A DNA stretch of 63,162 bases, the filler included, from Hyphochytrium catenoides (lineage: Eukaryota > Protista > Hyphochytriomycota), in the NCBI GenBank assembly GCA_900088475.1. It is 5 parts of 5 records of this genome, joined end to end, with 100 filler letters (N's around TTAATTAATTAA, not from the genome) between each part and the next. Parts side by side here need not be neighbours in the genome. Positions count along the whole stretch, not along the records: positions 40,901 to 52,455 come from FLMG01004523.1; 4 more parts are not named here. One strand, written 5' to 3'. The translations under genes and the position numbers were made by a program. The notes under the pieces are model-generated. The model did not search any database. It was not told the origin of the DNA and saw nothing but the letters and a program-made list of their open reading frames with translations. This document shows positions 40,901-52,455 of this stretch, in pieces. Every line of letters begins with the position of its first letter. Position 1 is the first letter of the stretch.

Positions 40901-43900
40901 GATTCTCTGTATACGATGCCCAGGTTGACATTTCTCAGCTTGCTGCTAAGATCTTCGATGTCCCAGATCCCTTCCCCTTTCCCTTCTCCCTCGATCGAGA
41001 GCACTGGAGGCCGCAAGTGGCGTTGTACATGGTCTGCCGCTGACTGTAAATCTAGATTTTGATAGAAAGCACATGGCTGGACCCTCTTTTGCTCCACTGC
41101 GGATGGTCAAGACATGCGGACAGGAAAGGATGGTGCCAAGAGTGAGCACCAAAGAAGAAGGAAGGACTCCAAGTAGGCAAAAGAATAGGGCTATGAGAGC
41201 TGTGTAAGAAGGATGTAAGGACCCCAACAGTGAGAAAGCCTAGATAAAGCCAAGATGCTTCTCACCAACCCCAACCAACCGAAGACACATAAAGAAGGAG
41301 GGACGTACATATTCACTCCCCTAATACGGCACTCTTCTCACCTTGGTTCTTGTCTGCCTCAATCTGTCCTGCGTCCCGCTTTGACTCTTGTTTTGTTTTT
41401 TTCTCGCTAACGAAGCACGCCCGCATTGCGGCCATGCATCTGTGTCTCAGCTGCTGGGGCGGCCCTGAGAGGACTTGATCATTGATACAAAGCTGGTCCC
41501 TAGAGCCTAAGATTGACATAGTCGGATTGTAGGGCGAGCGTTGGAGCTCTCTAAAAAAGAGCGGATAAGAAAAGAGAAAGTTGAATGCAGTTAGTCATAT
41601 TTTCCCAACACGTACAGAAAGCGACAAAAGCACAAAGAGGAAGAGAGAGAGAGAGAGAGGGAGAGAGAGAGATTCCTAGGCTGCAAGAGATATGAAGAGA
41701 GAGTCTATGACAGATAACGCAGCTTAGATGCGGCCTCTTGTACAACGATAGATAGCGGTAGACCACCAGGGCCGCCATGGAAAGACTCAGGAAGAGCTAA
41801 GTACCAAGAAGGACGGCAATTCTTACCTTGCGACCTGTGTCACTTGTGAGTGAGTCCTCGTGCAGTAGTAGATGCGCGGAACAGCTTGGTAAGGGTTCTT
41901 AAGCTCCTGCTGGAGCTGCCACGCGCACAACGAAGAGAGGAGAGCCGCCGTCTTCCCCGTCCCCGTAGGGGATTCAATAAGGGCATTTTCTCTTCGTGTC
42001 AGAGCTCGCAGAGTCTTGCTCATTAACTAAGAAGAACCCAACAGGAAGTTGATAGAAGAGCTGAGCCCAAGATACAACGGAAAGGATCAGAGTCTACTGC
42101 ACATACAGGGAGAGAAAGTGAAGAGATGAGTGGAAGAGTTAGAGAAAGAGTCTGAGATTTGAGGGAAGGCGAGTGTGGAAAATGATGTGAAAGATCAGTA
42201 TGCTTGGAAACGGGAGCCTGCGAGCGCTCACGGAGTGAGAGCGTGGGGGCGAAGCGACCCGCCGAGCAGCTAGAACGAGGTAGCTACAGAGAGAGAGGGA
42301 GCGATCCTAGAGATAAATGCCGTAAGATAGTACCGCTAGCTGTGGGGCCAGGGGCCGAGGAAAAGGAAACTTCACTGGCACGCCTGTGATGAATCCTTCC
42401 CACTTGGTCGCGCTCTGATTGACCTCTGCTGGGCCACAAACTGGGTAGTAGGACGAGGAGTTCTGATCGCGGCCATAGGAAGCCCGGTCCAACTCCTTTA
42501 ACCATTAGAAATCATGAAGTGGAAGCAGATCAGTCAGTTCTGGTTCTTTCTCCGTCTATGTCTTCGGTTTTCTCTCTAGTAGAACAAGCATCTCCTTGAT
42601 TGCCGTTGCGCTCATAGGGAGCTGTACCGTTTCGCTAGTTCACAGTCTTTGTCTCTGTTTTACTTAATTGCTCTCTCTCCCTCTCTTTATCTCTCTCAGT
42701 GGGCCTCTCTTCCTCTTTCATCACGCTCTCAATCGCTTTCTCTCCCTGTCGTAAACTTCTGACTATCGCTTCAGCATTCAACTGCCATTTTACCTGGCGG
42801 AAACTAGTGTTGATTCCATGTCTGCCTTTCCTCAGAGTGGCTTGCAGCGCTCCTTGAACCGCCAGTCTCTCGGAGAGGACATCTTTAAAAGACTGGAAAC
42901 GCCTCTCCTCTCGCAAGCTCTCCCTCTCATACCTCGCCATTAGCTGATGTTCCGCCATCTCCGATCGAGCTCTCTCCACTATTGAGGAAGTGAGCTGAGA
43001 CGGGAGGCGAGAGGCTTGTGACTGAGACAATTGCAAGAACAAGGGAAAACCCCAGCGAAGAGGACGAGGGCGAGAAAACAGAAGGCAGTGGATTAGACAG
43101 GAACAAGTAGCGGGGCAGTATTTGGAAGGATCTTTTCCTTATAAGTGAAAGCAGGGAAGGAGCGGCATAAGCCTACAATCCACGGAGGAGGAGCTCTAGC
43201 AACAAGCGAGAGGGAAAGAGGCATAGAGAAGAGTGAGAGAAGCGATCGTGAGGCGTGTGCCAATGGCAGGAGAAAGCCAGGATCGCTGGCGAGCTACCTG
43301 CTTGAGAAAAGTCTGAGCTTCACGATGCCCATCACTGACTTTCTCTCCTGCAGCTTGTGGTGGTGTCTTCTGTTCCGCCTTCACAAAAGAAGAAGGAGAT
43401 GCCAAAGACGTTGACATTTCGTTTCCCTTCGTCTCACTTCCAAAAGCCCTCTCCGTCCCTTGTTCTTCTTCTTCTGACGATTCTTCGACAAGAAGAATTG
43501 CGTCTGCTGCGCATTGGCCACCCACGGGAGGGAAGAGAGAGGGAGATGAAGAGGTAGAGATGAGGAGAATGGGAGACGAAGAAGAGCTCTCTTCTCCTAA
43601 AAGTTCCACATCCAACGCGCTTTGATGTTCTCCTCCGACCTCTCTGTAGGAGCCGTCCGGCTGCAACGTCGCAATGTGGATCTCTGCCGAGCAGCAGGAG
43701 AGAAACTCCAATAATTTTTCGTCTCTGCGGAGGTTCTAGAACAGGGGTAGAGAGAAAATGCTTAAGACACGTGGGAAACCAGAAGGAAAAAGAATAGCAA
43801 GAAAGAAAGTGAGGAGAGTGAGACAGAGCTGGATATAGAAAGAGAGCAAAAGAGAGAGAGAGAGAGAGAGAAGACGGGGAAAGAGGAAGAGAGGGACAGA

Positions 43901-44088
43901 GCCCCACCGAGAGACCGAAAGGCCGTAAGGAGAGGAACGACGCAGGAAGTCCATAGGATGTGGGAGGTAAAAGGGAGGTAGACAAGGGAAGAAGAAAAAA
44001 TGACACAACAAGAGGGAGAGTAAGGGAAGGTGTGAGATCAAGGACAACAGAAGTGAGAGGGAAAGGAGACATCTAGGTAGGTAGGTAG

Positions 44089-44149
<61 letters not shown>

Positions 44150-44951
44150 TTTGACAAGAGAGAGAGGAGAGAGTTTGAAGAGAGAGAGAGCGAGAAAAGG
44201 GGAAAGGAGAGGGGCTGGGAGAAAGAGAGAGAGATGAAAGCAGAGTACTAGAGAGACGAACTTTGGAAAGAGGGTCGTCTCTCCTTACCACAACTGGCAA
44301 AGCACAGACGGGACAATTCCCTTCCTCTTCCTCTATCTCTCCTCCTCGAGCTCCCCTCTTTCTCTTCTTCCCTCTCTTCCCTCTTCCCCGATAGGCTCTG
44401 AAAGTATCTTGGTCAAAGCATTGCGGATGTGTGCAGTGCAGACCTCGGACCGGGACCACTAGCCGTCCGCCACCCAGCGGGCAGCGGAGAGAGACCTTTC
44501 GAAGCGAAGATATGGACAGAAGGAAGGAGAGGGAACAAATGGCGAAAGTAAAGAGAAGATACCGGAGAGAGAAAGACAGAGTGGGATGTAAAGAAGAGAT
44601 AAGAAAGACCGAGAGAGAGGAGAGAGAGAGAGAGAAAGTGAGAAGAGGCAGGTAACGTGAGAAGCCGTGAAGCGAGATCAAATAGAGGGAAAGAGAAGGA
44701 GAGAGACAGCCACATAGAGAACGGAGAGAAGAGAGAGAGAAAGTGACCACAAAGGAGAGAGTGGAAGAGAGAAAAAGATGGAATTATCGTAGAAGACATC
44801 GGGGGGTTATTTCTGGAAAGAAGGGAAAGGAGAGGCAAAAGAAAGCCAGGCTGACGCTGAAGCTTATCGATGGGGCAGGACTGCCGTCTGTGCAAGACAA
44901 CGAAGGGATAAATGACTGGGAGGGGGGAAAAAGAAAGGGGACGAGGCGCGG

Positions 44952-44997
<46 letters not shown>

Positions 44998-45232
44998 AGA
45001 GAGACAGAGAGAGATAGAGAGAGAGAGGGAAGAAGAGGAAGAGGTGAAAATATAGAACGAAAGACGAAGTGAGAGAGAGAGAGAAAGCACACTAACGAGA
45101 GAAAGAGACAGAGTGACCGCGCCCCTAAGAGTAAACCGAGAAAAAGGGAAGAGAGAGAGGAGAGGATCAGGAGATGATGACCTGCTGTTCTAAGAGCTCT
45201 AGTTCGTCGTCTCCTTGCGAGAGTGCGGTCAT
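40901..45232 (-). CDS. FANCJ/RTEL1-family (XPD-like) Fe-S DNA helicase with an N-terminal SP-RING (MIZ) domain; 3'-truncated at the scaffold end
   Basis: Helicase motifs: ITGVPVKFPF.RP..PQ (Q motif), NALIESPTGTGKT, IYYCTRTHSQVTQV, ILGSRDQLCIN, Fe-S cysteines, WDIEDL. SP-RING: VSLRCP...VPVRG..CTHPQCFD...CPVC../NLRRD...LQPDGSY. Confidence 0.85.
44091..44142. repeat. (AG)n microsatellite, i.e. (CT)n on the sense strand of an intron in the helicase gene
   Basis: Perfect dinucleotide run seen directly. Confidence 0.95.
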
Positions 45233-45928
45233 GCTGACCCGAGAGCCTTGGTCCTAAAGCCTAAAGACAGAGGAAGATCCTCCGGGCGAAGTGACTGTCC
45301 CTAATCCTAAGACGCCCAGCGTCTGACATGTCGAAGGGCCAAGGAGTTACCTCTCTCGACCTTTCTCTCTCTCGCTCTCTCGAGAGGCAGACGTTTTTGT
45401 CTGCGCTCCTCTCTCTCTCTCTTCTCTCTCTTCTCTCTCTCTGTCTGTCTGTCGCGGTGTCTCTCTCTTATTCCCCCTCTCTGTCAGGGCTCCTAGGGGT
45501 TTTCTTGCTGCTCAGGCGGCTATGTCAACGTCGGTTCGTATCGCTTTGTCTCCCTCTCTCTCTCTTTCTTTCTCTCCCGTCGGCCTGCAGGCATTTCTCC
45601 TCATTAGCACATAGAGCATAAGGCATGACAGTTCGCGCTTGTCCTGCGCTGCTTGTTCATGTCTCGCTCAGATGTCTCCTTCCTCCTATCGCCTGTCCCT
45701 TGCTATTTCTTCCCTGTCCACCACTGCCACTGTCGCTGGATAGTGTGCTCAGCAGAGAAGGCGTGATGGGAGAGGGAAAGACGAGAAAGCATACGAAGGA
45801 GGAGGAAAAGCGAGTGAGAGAGAGCAAGGGGAGGAGGGACAACGGAAGAAAAGGGGGAAGTGAGAGAAGAGAGAGAGCACACACAGAGAGCGAGAGAGAA
45901 CGAAAGAGAGAGAGAGAGAGAGAGACAA

Positions 45929-45960
<32 letters not shown>

Positions 45961-45962
45961 CT

Positions 45963-46004
<42 letters not shown>

Positions 46005-46560
46005 CACAGCAAAGCCCAGTCATATTACGAACTCCCGCCAACATGCCGTTTAAACCCAAACTCTAACCGCTTTCCCTTTATCATCTCCCACAATTCTATA
46101 AGTCTGGATTCTCACAACCTAAAGATATTCCTACTTTGAAAACGTTTTTGGCCATGAGAGGCCAGACGAGAGACAGAGGCCGAGAGTCTAGAGGCAGAAG
46201 ATAGAGCATCTCTTGGTGCGAGAGACACCAAGAGATTCGTCCATTGAAGATGATGGAGAAGGAAGAAGGAAGTCTACTCTATCGCGGCTCTTTAGCCCTA
46301 GGAACTGCATGTGAGAGCCTGGTCATGAGGCAGAATCTGCGGCTCCTGAGGGCGCTTGTGCCATATGTTATTGACTTTCTTAGAGAGAGAGAGAAAAGAG
46401 AGAGAGACAAGTGAGAGACGACTCAACGCCCAAGATAGAGGAGAAGCGCCTGCGAGTGGCGGTACGTACTACTAAGAGAGACAACGAACTTCAATGGAGA
46501 CAAAGAGCGGGGAGAGAGGAGCACAGCCAAACTTTCTCCCCAGATGCTGCCGGGCCTCCT

Positions 46561-48889
46561 CTAAGGGCTCATATCGCCTCTTGCCACCATTTCCTTGGAG
46601 ATGATCACCCTCTGGATCTGTGAGGTTCCCTCATAAATCTGATAAATCTTCGCGTCTCTCATGAGCTTCTCCACTGGATACTCAGTGTTGAAGCCGTTAC
46701 CGCCAAAGATTTGCACTGCATCGGCTGCCACCTTGTTGGCGTGATCGCCAGCGAAAGCCTTGGCCATGGAAGCGAACATTGTGTTCTTACGTCCGTGGTC
46801 GATCTCATAGGCGGACTTGTAGGTCAACAGTCGCGCAGCCTCGATGCCTGTGGCCATGTCTAACGTTGGGGAAAGAGTTAGGGACAGAAGACGGATAAGC
46901 AGAAAGCAAGGGACAGCAGGAGATTCAAGACGCTGAAGCAAAGACGCTGAAGGGCCCGCGCTTGAAAGAGCTAAGAAGTGAAAGGAGGTAAAGACGGCAG
47001 AGCCATTTCACATGCAACAACTTCGAACCGACCAGGTCTAAGTTTTAGGCATTGCCATAGAGATAGCCACAGAGAGTCGCCCGTCATGGGAGAAGGTGTG
47101 GAGAGGGGCTAAACGGGAACGCACGTACGCGATAGAAGAGAGAGAGGAAAGCGAGCAGAGGGAGGGAAGAGGTCACAAGAGGAGTTACCTGCAAGCATAA
47201 AGGAGACAGCCTGGTGGTTGTAGATCGGTGTCCCGAACGTCTTTCTCTCCTGTGCGTACTTGAAAGCTTCGTCAAAAGCCCGTCGAGCCAGGCCCACAGC
47301 TCCAGCAGCCACAGGCGGACGAGTGTGATCGAAGGCCTGCATCGCGATCTTGAAGCCGTAACCAGGAGAGCCTTACCAGGACAAGCAGACATTAGACGGC
47401 AAGATCATGTCTCCCGCTTTGACCAGCTGTTGTCTCTGCGTTGAGGGAAATCAATCGCATCCGCTTTTCTCTCTTTGTAATCTTCTCTCTCTCTTTCTTT
47501 GCCTATTTGTCCTCCCTCCCTCTCTGCGCCATCACTGGCACTGCCAGATTGTGAGCTTTATACCAACCTAGGACATTCTCTGCGGGTATTACTACGTCTT
47601 CGAAGGTAATGCCTCTAGTATCAGAGCAGCGCTGGCCAAGGTTGATTTCCTTGCGGCCGACAGTGATGCCTGCAAAGAGTAAAGAAATAAGGTCATCTCG
47701 GCAGCTGTAGAGATGTGGAGACTTGGACTAGATAGATAAAGGACTAAGGAGCACAATGAAAGAGGGAGACAGGAGTGGAGTGAAGTACCTGGAGTCTGGG
47801 CGTCAACAACGAAGCCCGTGAAAGCTGACCCGGCCTTGGCCTTAGGATCCGTCTTTGCCAATACAAAGTACCAGCCGCCACTTTCCTGAGCCATTCCTCC
47901 ATTCGTGATCCACATCTTATTGCCATTCTAACAGCACGAGAAATGAGCGTCATGGGAGAGAAAGGCTTTGTAGAAAAAGCATGAGCTAGGAAGAACTCAA
48001 GACTCCGTCGCACACGACATGAACTCTGACCAGGGTAAAGACAGGAGGCCAAAAAAGCAGCAGAGATAGTAGCACGATCTGGGGGAGTCTTCCCTAGCAA
48101 CCTACCAGGACCCAGCTATCTCCCTTTTTGACTGCAGTCGTCTTTGCTCCGGCGACATCTGAACCTGCACCAGGCTCCGTCACACAGTAAGCGGCCTGGA
48201 TCGGGGCCTCAGTGAGTCGGCCGAGATACTTCTTCTTCTGCTCAGGATTGGCAGCAACCACCAACGGCGCGATCGCAAGGTTGTTCGCCTCCATAGCGGT
48301 CATCATGCCTAACGCAGGGAGCGTCAAAGAAGGGAAACTTCACGCTATGTGTGCGGTGTATCGTTGCCCGTTGCACGGCTACAGAGACTGTTCCCCCATT
48401 GCGCATAGATACCCCTCTAACTTCGTCACTTTTTCGTTTGCCAATCCTTTTCCCCATTGGAAACGCTTTCTTTCTTGAGTGACATTACCTGTGCATCCAT
48501 AGGCAAGCTCCTCGGCGATAATAACCCCATCCAACGCACCAAGGCCCATGCCGCCGTATTCCTGTCAAGCGGATTAGTCCAATTTGATTGGAAGACGTAG
48601 TAGTTTCTAGTGCCTTTACCTCTTCGATGTGACCGTTGCAGAGGCCTAGCTCCCATGCCTTCTCGAATATCTCTTTTGGATACTTTCCAGTGCGGTCATA
48701 CTCCGCGGCCTGGGGAATCATAACCTCCTGCGCAAACTTTCTCGCCAGAGATTGGAACTCCTTCTGCTCATCACTGAGCTTGAAAGAAAGACCTGTGCTC
48801 GGATCGGCAGCCGTGCCAAACCCTCTAAGTGCATTCACACGCAGAGGTGCGGCAGCAGCCACAGAACGATGTACCAGCTTGGAGAGCAT
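46561..48889 (-). CDS. ACADM: Medium-chain acyl-CoA dehydrogenase, mitochondrial
   Basis: Arg/Ala-rich presequence, [109 protein letters not shown]. Confidence 0.96.
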
Positions 48890-49550
48890 TGTTTTCTATT
48901 TCCAAGCTCTTCAGCAAGCTAAACAAGGAGTGTGACGAAGCTCAGCAACTTGAAAAGTGAGATCTCTCTATGAAGTGGCTTGGCCTAGGTCCTGGGCTAT
49001 CGAGGATAGTGAGTCTCTGGGTCGGCGTGGCGTCTATGTGGCTTGTCTATGGGACCGTCTGCAAGCTCTGAGAGACAGACTCTTGACTCTTTCTCACAGA
49101 CCGTCAGATTGACCGATGGCGCGGCGCGGTGAGGATCTGACGTGGGGCCGACTGACTGCAAGCTCCAAGGGGAGGTCAGGGATCACGCGCACTCCAGGGG
49201 TCGCTCTGAAATTGGCGTAGGATCAGGATGTGAAGTGTACAACAAGATGAAGGCTGGTTAATAAGGGCGGAATATGATTAGGAGCCCAGTAGAGGCCAAG
49301 TTGAAGATTGACTTTAGTTGGTGTTTCTTTTGACAACACACAGAACGGGGAAAGTCGCTCCTGTGCTCCCCCTGGAAGCTTGAAGTCCAGTCTCTCAGTA
49401 CTTCCCCAGTAATATGGGCGGTTGGCCGTTAGCGGACTTTTCTCCGTTTCAGTTCTGGGATAAAGAGGCAGAGGAGCGGAGGGGAGGGCCTGGAGGGACA
49501 AGTACCAGAGATATAATGAGAGAGGAGAGAGACAGAGAGACAGAGAGAGA

Positions 49551-49584
<34 letters not shown>

Positions 49585-50207
49585 CAGACAGAGACAGAGA
49601 GAGAGAGGAAGAAAGAAAGACACTGAAAACGACCAGAAAGATGGAGAAAAGAAAGAGCGGGAGAGAGAGAGAGAGGAAGAAAAAAGGACACGGAAAACAA
49701 CCAATGACGGAAAAAAGAAAGAGCAGACAGAGAGAGAGAGGTGAGAGAGAGAAAAGAGAAAGAAAGGAGGGAAAGACGAACTAGTTCTACGTCCAGCTTC
49801 ATCTGTCGAAGAAGAGGAGTTGTCTACAAGCGCGAAGGAGAAGGAGGAAGTGGGAAGAAACAACAGATTCCCCTGGCAAGAAGAGAACAACAAGATCATA
49901 GAAAAGGAGAGATCTTTTCCTCTCATCCTTCCTGGGACAACCGATGAGAAGGACGTTGATGCCATCATCAGAGAGCCAACGACCCACTTCCTCGGGCGAC
50001 ATCCTGCTGGATACTGACGTGAGCAAGATAATCAGCTCTGCCGGCGCTGTCTTTGGAGGTCAGTAGCGGACCATTCAGCTCCTACTCAAGCTGCAGGTTG
50101 ATCATCCAGCCAGCCTTGGAGAAGGAGGAATAGCCAAAAGTGCTCAGAGACGAAGCCCTACTATATGATACCATCGCCTGCCCGCTTGCAGGTCCAGACC
50201 TGGGCTG

Positions 50208-50527
50208 ATGGGCTCTGTCGAATGGAAGATCTTGAATGCGATCGGCTGCAAGGACAATTCGCCTCTTCTGCCTCTTCAGAAGTGTGATACAGATGACGAC
50301 TGCACGCTGTACTCACAGTGCTGTCAGGCCCTTGGAACATGCGTCTGCAACAACCTTGTGGCGCACGTAGGGCCTAGATGTGACCAGATTACCAGGGTAA
50401 GGAGAGACAGACACGCGCTAAGAGAGAAGAGGAGCTCAACAAGGAAGAAAAGGGAGATGAAAGAGATAATCCAAAAGGCGAGCGAGGGGGGAGAGAGAAG
50501 AGAAAGAGGAACAAAAGGAGAGAGAGT

Positions 50528-50561
<34 letters not shown>

Positions 50562-52201
50562 NNNNNNNNNNNNNNNNCATCAGTTATATTACCTCTGTAG
50601 CTTTCTTTTATGAGGATCGTTTAGTTTGCCTTCATAGACAGCCCGGCGATGAAGGAAGGAGGAAGGAAGGAATGATGAGTCCTCCTTCCTCTTCGCTCTC
50701 TATCTCTCTATCGTTTTCCACTCGTTCTTCTCATCTTCATTTGCTCACTTTTCCTTCTCTTTCTCTCTCTCTCTCGCTCTCTCTCTCTCTGTGTGTGTGT
50801 GTGTCTGTGCTTCTGTTGTCTCTCTCTGCTGGTTCCTAACTGCTCTTTGCTCTTGTTCGTATGTTCTCTTAGATCTCGGTGGCCTACGCTATCCTAGAGT
50901 ATCTGATCTTTCTGGGCTGGTTCCTGCTCACAGCCGCCGCCGTATGGGCAATCTTCAACATCTATCGACGGCGATACTCTCTCCCACTCATTCTCAAGAT
51001 AAGGACATATCTACTCTTCTTCGTCCTTGGTAGTGCCACGTGTGCTATCAAGCACATTGCCATCAAAGCCCATGAGTACCTGGGGCTGGCTCCCTCAGAC
51101 GATCCAGGTCTCTTCGTGCTCTTCCGTTCATCGATTCTTGGCATCTCTATCCTTATCCTTTATGGCTGCGCGGTGCTCGTTCCTATCTCGTGGCTGGACG
51201 TCTCTCTCACTTTGTCTGCTTCGGAAGAAGAAAGGGAGAAGACGATGCAGAGAAGGAAGAGAATCTTGCTCCTGACCACCATTCTCCCCTTCCTTCAAGT
51301 GGTAGCTTTCTATGGAATGTTGGCCGTGGTGGTCGCGGTGCTAACACTTGTCAATATGGTGGCGGTGATGGCTGCAGTGGTGGTGGCGGGAAGTAGTGCT
51401 GGAAGAGTGATGTTCCTCGTAGAGAGAGAGAAACAGAAAGTCAAGAGCCATATGTCCTCTCTCTCTCGCAAATCTGGATCCACCGTTGGAGGAGGAGGAG
51501 GAGAGACATGCACAGGCGACGCTTTCTGGAAGCTAAAGGAAGGTAAGGATAACAAGGAAGATGAGAACCGAACATCTCTTCTGAGCACACGGCTCTTCTT
51601 CTACAAGCTGCCTCTCTTCTTCTACATTATTGGCACCTTATCTCATAACTTTCGTCGTCTTTGATCCTCTGCGGATGGAGCTGCAGCACTTGCCTCCATT
51701 ACTCTTCTCTCTCTCCCTCTCTCTTCTCTCTGCTTTTTCTGTACCTCTTCCTGCTCCTCTAGCTCGTCTACGACTCGTTTTCTTCCTTCTCGCATTAATC
51801 TTCTCTCTCGTTCGTTCTTTCCTCACAACTGTTTCTCCTGTCGTCTCATATCTTCTGCCGCTTCTCTCTTCCGTGTTGCACCACTTTGAGCAGTCGTCAA
51901 CAACCCCATTCTGCCCGGTACACAGACCCTCACATTCGGCTGGGTCTGGCTCAGGAAAGTGAGCGCTTCTCTTCTTCTCATCTACTTCGGACTCTTCTTT
52001 GACACTTTCCTGATGACACGGTACAACTACGGAGATAACACGTCAGGCATGCAGATCTTCCTCTTTGATATTGCTTACGACACACTTGTTCTCCTCTCTG
52101 GCTACTTCATGCTGAAGAGCTTCCTCTCTATTATCAACTATGGGATATTGTGCGGTCCAACTGCGGAGGAGGCGGAGAAGAATGGAGGGGAAAGAGGCTA
52201 A
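50208..52201 (+). CDS. Seven-transmembrane receptor-like protein with an N-terminal EGF-like Cys-rich domain, 3 exons
   Basis: Exons 50208-50396, 50873-51542, 51894-52201 join in frame. C-x5-C-x5-CC-x5-C-x-C-x10-C ectodomain, then about seven hydrophobic segments with a long polar loop between TM5 and TM6. Confidence 0.65.
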
Positions 52202-52353
52202 GATCGGGCAGGTGGAGGAAGGGATAGACCGGGGAAGGGAGAAACATGTTGAGGAAAGCAAGGAAGCTATAGGCTGGAGAGGAAGCAATAGCCATTCTTG
52301 GGGTATGGAGGAAAAACAAACAACCGGGGATCGAAGAGAGAAAGAGAAAGAGA

Positions 52354-52385
<32 letters not shown>

Positions 52386-52455
52386 AAGAGCTAGTGAAAA
52401 GAAAGAGAGAGAGAAAAAACGGTCAGTTGCCGTTCATCCTCTTCCCGGGTTGGCA

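Follow-up and report, generated by a model that had tools for sequence, protein, structure and literature searches.

The stretch of DNA considered here (the window, 63,162 nucleotides with filler included) joins five parts of the genome of the protist Hyphochytrium catenoides (Hyphochytriomycota; GCA_900088475.1), and the present analysis concerns the part taken from FLMG01004523.1 (positions 40,901 to 52,455). On the minus strand of this piece a complete SP-RING of the PIAS type, the domain of SUMO E3 ligases, lies on the same strand as an iron-sulfur (Fe-S) helicase, 1.8 kb ahead of where the helicase starts, and the exons of the two can be spliced into a single frame. The two domains stand in this order, the frame is open through all of the proposed joins, and homology backs joins 1, 2, 5 and 6 (exons 1/2, 2/3, 5/6 and 6/7). 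On balance we lean towards a single multi-exon gene on the minus strand, starting from the ATG at 45232, which would fuse an SP-RING module to the Fe-S helicase.

Splicing was inferred from the sequence, and all coordinates are on the minus strand unless marked (+). A previous sequence-only reading of this DNA had proposed six exons with phase-0 GT-AG borders and no stop; all six were recovered on the minus strand as claimed, and their translations match (MTALSQGDDELELLEQQ / VSLRCP...CTHPQCFD...CPVCALPVV / NLRRDEKLLEFL...LQPDGSY / ...DAILLVEESSEEEE...). Exons 1-5 each have a length divisible by three, are free of stops and are flanked by AG and GT. Introns 1-5 (between 45181 and 42027) are all of phase 0, which makes exons 2-5 symmetric, so that skipping any one of them, exon 4 included, would preserve the frame. 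The model was extended downstream by placing the end of exon 6 at 41827 (AAG/GTAAGA) and by adding exon 7 and the beginning of exon 8, which is cut at 40901 (Table 1).

The SP-RING is encoded by exon 2. In a comparison with the Pfam zf-MIZ profile (PF02891) the exon scored 49.3 bits (cut-off 33.5, E 4.3e-13), with only profile positions 1-33 aligned because an insert interrupts the domain. The zf-Nse profile gave 19.7 bits, under its cut-off of 27. A protein language-model search placed exon 2 closest to zf-Nse clusters, and its best matches among solved structures were PIAS2 and PIAS3. When exon 2 was aligned with ten SP-RINGs (n = 11), C5, C21, H23, C26, C61 and C64 fell in invariant columns; the zinc pattern C-x-H-x2-C ... 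C-x2-C (C21, H23, C26, C61 and C64) is kept and every zinc ligand is present. An AlphaFold model of the exon, built on this 11-row alignment, had a predicted local distance difference test (pLDDT) score of 57. The insert is 17 residues long and is absent from the homologues found by blastp. It is surrounded by a loop, first basic and then acidic (about 44318-44390, RGRGKRGKKRKRGARGGEIEEEE), that looks like a nuclear localization signal, and the Trp that usually precedes CPVC is missing.

The flanks of the domain are of the PIAS type as well. In blastp comparisons of spliced exons 1-3 with PIAS-like proteins the alignments begin at residues 1-4 and cross the exon 1/2 junction, and the alignment to P0019 and P0066, two amoeba transcriptome proteins, spans residues 4-140, crosses the exon 2/3 junction and takes in the post-RING segment LRRD...LQPDGSY (43735-43640). 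Since the alignments cross both junctions, introns 1 and 2 are supported. Two hydrophobic cores resembling SUMO-interacting motifs (SIMs) lie beside Ser/Glu runs, PILLIS (43573-43556) and DAILLVEESSEEEE (43504-43463); the patterns, ILLV with EESSEEEE and ILLI with STSSS, make them candidate SIMs by pattern alone. Thus the PIAS-type SP-RING with its flanks, as announced by the sequence-only reading, was recovered by profile, zinc ligands and alignment, and the acidic SIM-like stretch is there as a pattern. The module shares with PIAS1-4 and Siz1/Siz2 a zf-MIZ score over the cut-off, the zinc ligands, the acidic stretch ahead of the RING and the L-x-x-D...DGS(Y/W) segment, as well as, by pattern, the PIAS arrangement of a hydrophobic SIM core followed by a Ser/Glu run. 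From this PIAS-type sequence a SUMO E3 activity of the N-terminal module is predicted.

Unlike PIAS and Siz proteins, the predicted product has no SAP or PINIT domain N-terminal to the SP-RING, and its ATG stands only 17 codons ahead of the RING; full-length homologues carry the SP-RING hundreds of residues from the N-terminus. An in-frame TAG stands 8 codons ahead of the ATG of exon 1, and between 45233 and 46560 no coding sequence was found, only low-complexity CT-repeat open reading frames (ORFs). With nothing coding upstream and the RING 17 residues from the ATG, the SP-RING by itself would be without a targeting region. The insert in the basic/acidic loop, the missing Trp before CPVC and the helicase that may follow set it further apart from PIAS and Siz. 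A strong donor-like GAG/GTAACT (9.2 bits) was observed 118 nucleotides upstream of the exon 1 ATG, with AG sites immediately before the ATG (45241-45350), and there may be an intron in the 5' untranslated region (UTR) at 45241-45350, which would place the transcription start upstream of 45350.

Judged by their motifs and matches, exons 5-8 are the N-terminus of an XPD-family Fe-S helicase, nearest to RTEL1/FANCJ. Exon 6 carries motif I (SPTGTGKT), and its top match among solved structures was FANCJ (9ej9, E 2e-9), followed by XPD/Rad3 and CHL1; the fragments closest to it, named RTEL1 or Rad3-related in their sources, are 44-51% identical, and no close relative was found in the exon 6 search. 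Exon 7 alone scored 22.0 bits against DEAD_2 (PF06733, cut-off 21), a marginal match, since only a fragment was scored. The FANCJ/RTEL1-like Fe-S helicase of the sequence-only reading was therefore upheld on exons 6 and 7. Spliced exons 5-8 aligned by blastp to RTEL1-like N-terminal fragments from residues 27-41 onward, and the alignments take in the N-terminal FPF...Q motif (VKFPFPRPLAPQLALM) and cross the exon 5/6 and 6/7 junctions. Because they run from the FPF motif across both junctions, exon 5 is part of the helicase and there is homology behind introns 5 and 6; the reading frame from exon 6 to exon 7 is continuous. Taken singly, exons 5, 7 and 8 gave no significant match among solved structures, and exon 8 gave none in Pfam; exon 8 presumably belongs to the Fe-S domain, a placement guided by the known sequences of RTEL1 and FANCJ.

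In common with RTEL1 and FANCJ (BRIP1) the helicase has the N-terminal FPF-x-P-x-x-Q, motifs I and Ia and a DEAD_2 match, together with candidate cysteines and the C-x-FY-x-N and DIEDL landmarks of the Fe-S domain. Three positions of candidate Fe-S cysteines are visible (DQLC, HRC/RAC and QPCAFYQN). RTEL1 and FANCJ carry their fourth Fe-S cysteine in a CPYY motif; at the corresponding point here, 9 residues past DIEDL and 6 residues short of the end of the piece, GIVY is found instead (40901-40960). It is possible that the fourth ligand has been lost, or that a donor at ATC/GTATAC leads to an exon beyond the edge. The cues to the subfamily, taken over about 250 residues, are FANCJ as the best structure and RTEL1/Rad3-related names on the closest fragments. 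The match to the FANCJ structure requires that its insert of about 170 residues between motifs I and Ia be skipped, whereas the spacer here is short, as in RTEL1. The helicase runs off the piece at 40901, and motif II (DEAH), the arch domain and Helicase_C_2 fall beyond that point.

Table 1. Exons of the proposed SP-RING and helicase gene and the two introns on which the fusion depends
Feature	Position	Strand	Content
Exon 1	45182-45232	-	ATG (45232-45230) and acidic GDDELELLEQQ, as precedes PIAS-type SP-RINGs; donor CAG/GTCATC
Exon 2	44289-44495	-	SP-RING (zf-MIZ) with the 17-residue insert between the CFD and CPVC halves
Exon 3	43298-43735	-	PIAS-type post-RING segment, two SIM-like cores and a 51-residue tail leading to donor CAG/GTAGCT
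Intron 3	43022-43297	-	276 nucleotides; predicted; the join deciding between fusion and two genes
Exon 4	42794-43021	-	Charged, helix-like linker, no family match; ATGs 42958 and 42940; donor CAG/GTAAAA
Intron 4	42496-42793	-	Predicted; purine-rich
Exon 5	42334-42495	-	No ATG; conserved N-terminus of the helicase (...WEGFITGVPVKFPFPRPLAPQLA), preceded by 26 residues unmatched in homologues
Exon 6	41827-42026	-	Motif I ESPTGTGKT, short spacer, start of motif Ia YYCTRTHSQ
Exon 7	41342-41550	-	DEAD_2 region; LGSRDQLC..., HRC and RAC hold the first candidate Fe-S cysteines
Exon 8	40901-41096	-	Incomplete, as the piece ends at 40901; candidate third Fe-S cysteine in PCAFYQN, then WDIEDL and GIVY; placed by frame and acceptor

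Whether the two parts belong to one gene depends on exon 4 and the joins on either side of it. It had been argued from the sequence that the helicase must start upstream of its first exon. This holds as far as exon 5 is concerned, since this exon lacks an ATG and its acceptor is preceded, 4 codons away, by a stop, so that an upstream coding exon is needed; the argument reaches only as far as exon 4, which has in-frame ATGs of its own at 42940 and 42958, the latter with a G in positions -3 and +4. When all paths from an ATG to a donor between 43297 and 42500 were enumerated, these two proved to be the sole workable independent starts of the helicase.

The splice sites of introns 3 and 4 were scored with donor and acceptor matrices derived from 11 homology-validated introns of the same piece, five from this gene and six from the medium-chain-type acyl-CoA dehydrogenase (ACAD) gene that lies complete at 46561-48889, directly upstream of the SP-RING exons and in the same orientation (7 exons, 6 GT-AG introns of 58-329 nucleotides, 422 residues in frame and a mitochondrial-looking N-terminus). 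The donor at 43297 (7.8 bits) is the best GT between 43735 and 43150, and that at 42793 (7.9 bits) the best between 43021 and 42500. The acceptor at 43022 (5.4 bits) is second to a single AG, which is unusable because an in-frame stop follows it, and is therefore the best usable one. Equally good donors occur about 0.6-1.1 times per kb and equally good acceptors about twice per kb; as such sites are this rare, a strong in-phase pair is unlikely to have arisen here by chance (a few per cent). Intron 3 is 70% pyrimidine, like the validated introns. If exon 3 is left unspliced its frame stops at 43196, after 34 further codons, and between this stop and the ATG at 42958 there are 237 nucleotides, as compared with 1328 between the ACAD stop and the exon 1 ATG. 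The splice-site scores and the gene spacing favour a single gene, without proving it.

Several points weigh against the fusion. The removal of introns 3 (43297-43022) and 4 (42793-42496) was read from the sequence, with matrices built on only 11 sites, and in the searches made no homology was found across the exon 3/4 or exon 4/5 junction; as regards the fusion proposed in the sequence-only reading, the open frame, splice scores and spacing spoke for it and these two joins lacked support from homologues. A look-up of RNA sequencing runs returned none. Exon 4 and the tail of exon 3 match no Pfam family, and exon 3 had no match among proteins of 80-255 residues. Codon-usage log-odds (747 training codons) split off the CT-rich introns only and were indecisive on exon 4 and the part ahead of its ATG, and reading through past exon 4 scored well too. 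The ATG at 42958 is workable as a separate start of the helicase, and the acceptor at 43022 would also be explained by a helicase mRNA that is trans-spliced or driven by an internal promoter. PIAS-like proteins often end soon after the SIM (for example P0005), so that the gene could end with exon 3. Every RTEL1-like relative begins with a Met of its own, 8-33 residues ahead of FPF, unlike the present sequence, in which at least 42 residues precede it (97 to about 400, depending on the model).

The searches for relatives weigh on the same side. In a phmmer search of exon 2 against 1.84 billion representative proteins 43 matches were obtained, from fungi, amoebae, oomycetes, ciliates and metagenome proteins, none of them near-identical, and the top three rank high only through a repeated domain. 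An N-terminal SP-RING in a protein of fusion length was seen in none of the 43, and none of the 17 longest or best matches, when scanned with Pfam, had a DEAD_2 or helicase domain. No helicase was found near the SP-RING on the contig of P0045, the best single-copy match, and the metagenome scan gave a single unrelated contig of 1.4 kb. None of the collections searched yielded a close relative or a protein of the organism itself. The sequence-only reading knew of no polypeptide with both domains; likewise none came up among the SP-RING matches, and descriptions of zf-MIZ with DEAD_2, SP-RING with RTEL1 or SP-RING with FANCJ were not found in the papers searched. If the fusion is real, two familiar modules are joined in it in a combination that is new.

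The best surviving alternative, which we hold to be possible and rather unlikely, is that there are two close-packed genes, one running from exon 1 through exon 3 to the stop at 43196 and encoding a small SP-RING protein that stands alone (about 266 residues), the other encoding the helicase from the ATG at 42958 or 42940, with exon 4 spliced to exon 5, in which case the pairing of 43297 with 43022 would be coincidental. Such an arrangement would suit the early stop after unspliced exon 3, the ATGs of exon 4 with the top-scoring donor behind them, the tendency of PIAS-like proteins to end near the SIM, the Met with which helicase relatives begin and the lack of a fused homologue among the SP-RING matches; there are also short proteins with a near-N-terminal SP-RING among these matches (P0030, P0040 and P0042), which may be fragments. 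However, it would have to fit a 3' UTR, a poly(A) site, a promoter and a 5' UTR into 237 nucleotides next to a spacer of 1328, and it would leave to coincidence both the best local donor, which is where exon 3 ends, and a CAG acceptor with its pyrimidine tract 64 nucleotides ahead of the ATG at 42958. The first gene would moreover lack any targeting domain, and the second would keep a 97-residue extension before FPF that has no homologue.

It is less probable still, and in our opinion improbable, that one transcription unit yields two products, either through an internal promoter or as a polycistron resolved by spliced-leader trans-splicing at 43022, with the fused form being optional. Very short gene spacing is typical of operon-like units in trans-splicing organisms, and the spacing here would fit, as would a good acceptor at 43022 placed just upstream of an ATG in good context. 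Against this, no spliced leader or other sign of trans-splicing was seen in the piece, the neighbouring genes are 1.3 kb apart, unlike those of an operon, and the strong cis donor at 43297 would be left unexplained. That the SP-RING exons are a non-functional remnant, or were brought next to an unrelated helicase gene by a chimeric assembly, we regard as very improbable: the short draft scaffold with its internal run of 16 N, the long (GA/CT)n arrays in introns 1 and 2 and the unusual RING, with its insert and missing Trp, could be read in this way, but the open frame is intact, the zinc ligands and both flanks are conserved over three exons, the gap (50562-50577) is far off, and the sequence from exon 3 to exon 6 contains neither a tandem repeat nor an N gap, which makes a chimeric join there unlikely.

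If exons 1-8 do form a single gene, its product would consist of three parts. At the extreme N-terminus there would be a minimal PIAS-type SUMO E3, comprising the SP-RING, the post-RING segment and one or two SIM-like motifs and lacking SAP and PINIT; a linker of about 170 low-complexity and charged residues (from the exon 3 tail through exon 4 into the first part of exon 5) would then lead to a DNA helicase of the RTEL1/FANCJ branch of the XPD-family Fe-S helicases. The helicase may substitute for the missing PINIT/SAP as the targeting part, in that Ubc9~SUMO would be brought to whatever the helicase loads on, and SUMO would be passed to the helicase itself or to partners at forks, D-loops or telomeres, while either the charged E2 or partners already SUMOylated would be retained by the SIMs. 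That some lineage outside the public protein sets has a helicase of the RTEL1/FANCJ class whose N-terminus is a catalytic SP-RING-SIM module of the PIAS type is a proposition to which we would assign even chances. The suggestion of the sequence-only reading that the helicase SUMOylates at the structures it unwinds is speculation.

Nse2/Mms21, in the Smc5/6 complex, is an SP-RING SUMO E3 that acts in trans on recombination and repair helicases. Unlike in the present case, its RING is C-terminal and follows a Smc5-binding helical arm, whereas the flanks here are of the PIAS type. A polypeptide that unites a modifier-ligase RING with a DNA motor has its nearest precedent in Rad5/HLTF/SHPRH, and the resemblance is functional only: in those proteins a C3HC4 RING working with ubiquitin E2s is embedded in an SNF2 ATPase, whereas here an SP-RING of the Ubc9/SUMO type would stand N-terminal to an SF2 Fe-S helicase. 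A 'RING/helicase' architecture of this ligase-and-motor kind is listed in a survey of apicomplexan E3s (PMC2408969).

The surroundings of the gene are rich in simple repeats. Arrays of (GA)n/(CT)n with 22-72 copies were observed in introns and spacers at 44091-44195, 44956-45027, 45862-46004, 49518-49607 and 50518-50561, and the sequence-only reading had linked the helicase to GA/CT tracts; beyond their abundance in introns and spacers this link was unsupported. On the sense strand, pyrimidines make up 81-82% of introns 1 and 2, in the SP-RING part. No single strand rule applies, as the opposite bias, towards purines, is seen in intron 4 and in ACAD introns 2 and 5. The idea that purine-rich intron 4 might be a hidden promoter was rejected, the validated ACAD introns 2 and 5 being equally purine-rich. 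Further along the piece a plus-strand gene at 50208-52201 (+) has a Cys-rich N-terminal exon (50208-50400) and long ORFs at 50879-51664 and 51959-52201, with hydrophobic, probably membrane-spanning segments; it had no Pfam match, and for its membrane ORF of 261 residues no homologue came up among proteins of 143-457 residues. The run of 16 N mentioned above is a scaffold gap within a GA repeat, and the piece resembles a short-read draft scaffold.

SUMO ligases and the helicases of recombination and replication are known to cooperate in trans, as Nse2 does with Sgs1 or Mph1 and as Siz1-modified PCNA does with Srs2. Should the SP-RING and the helicase prove to be encoded separately, the locus would simply hold a small and unusual SP-RING gene beside an ordinary helicase gene. 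If the fusion is true, it would be direct genomic evidence of the RTEL1/FANCJ-type helicase class as a site of SUMO ligation, with a SUMO E3 aimed by a DNA helicase instead of by PINIT/SAP, and would form a Rosetta-stone link of SUMO ligation to RTEL1/FANCJ-type unwinding. It would also offer a compact protein in which to study the way an E3 that lacks PINIT/SAP finds its substrates.

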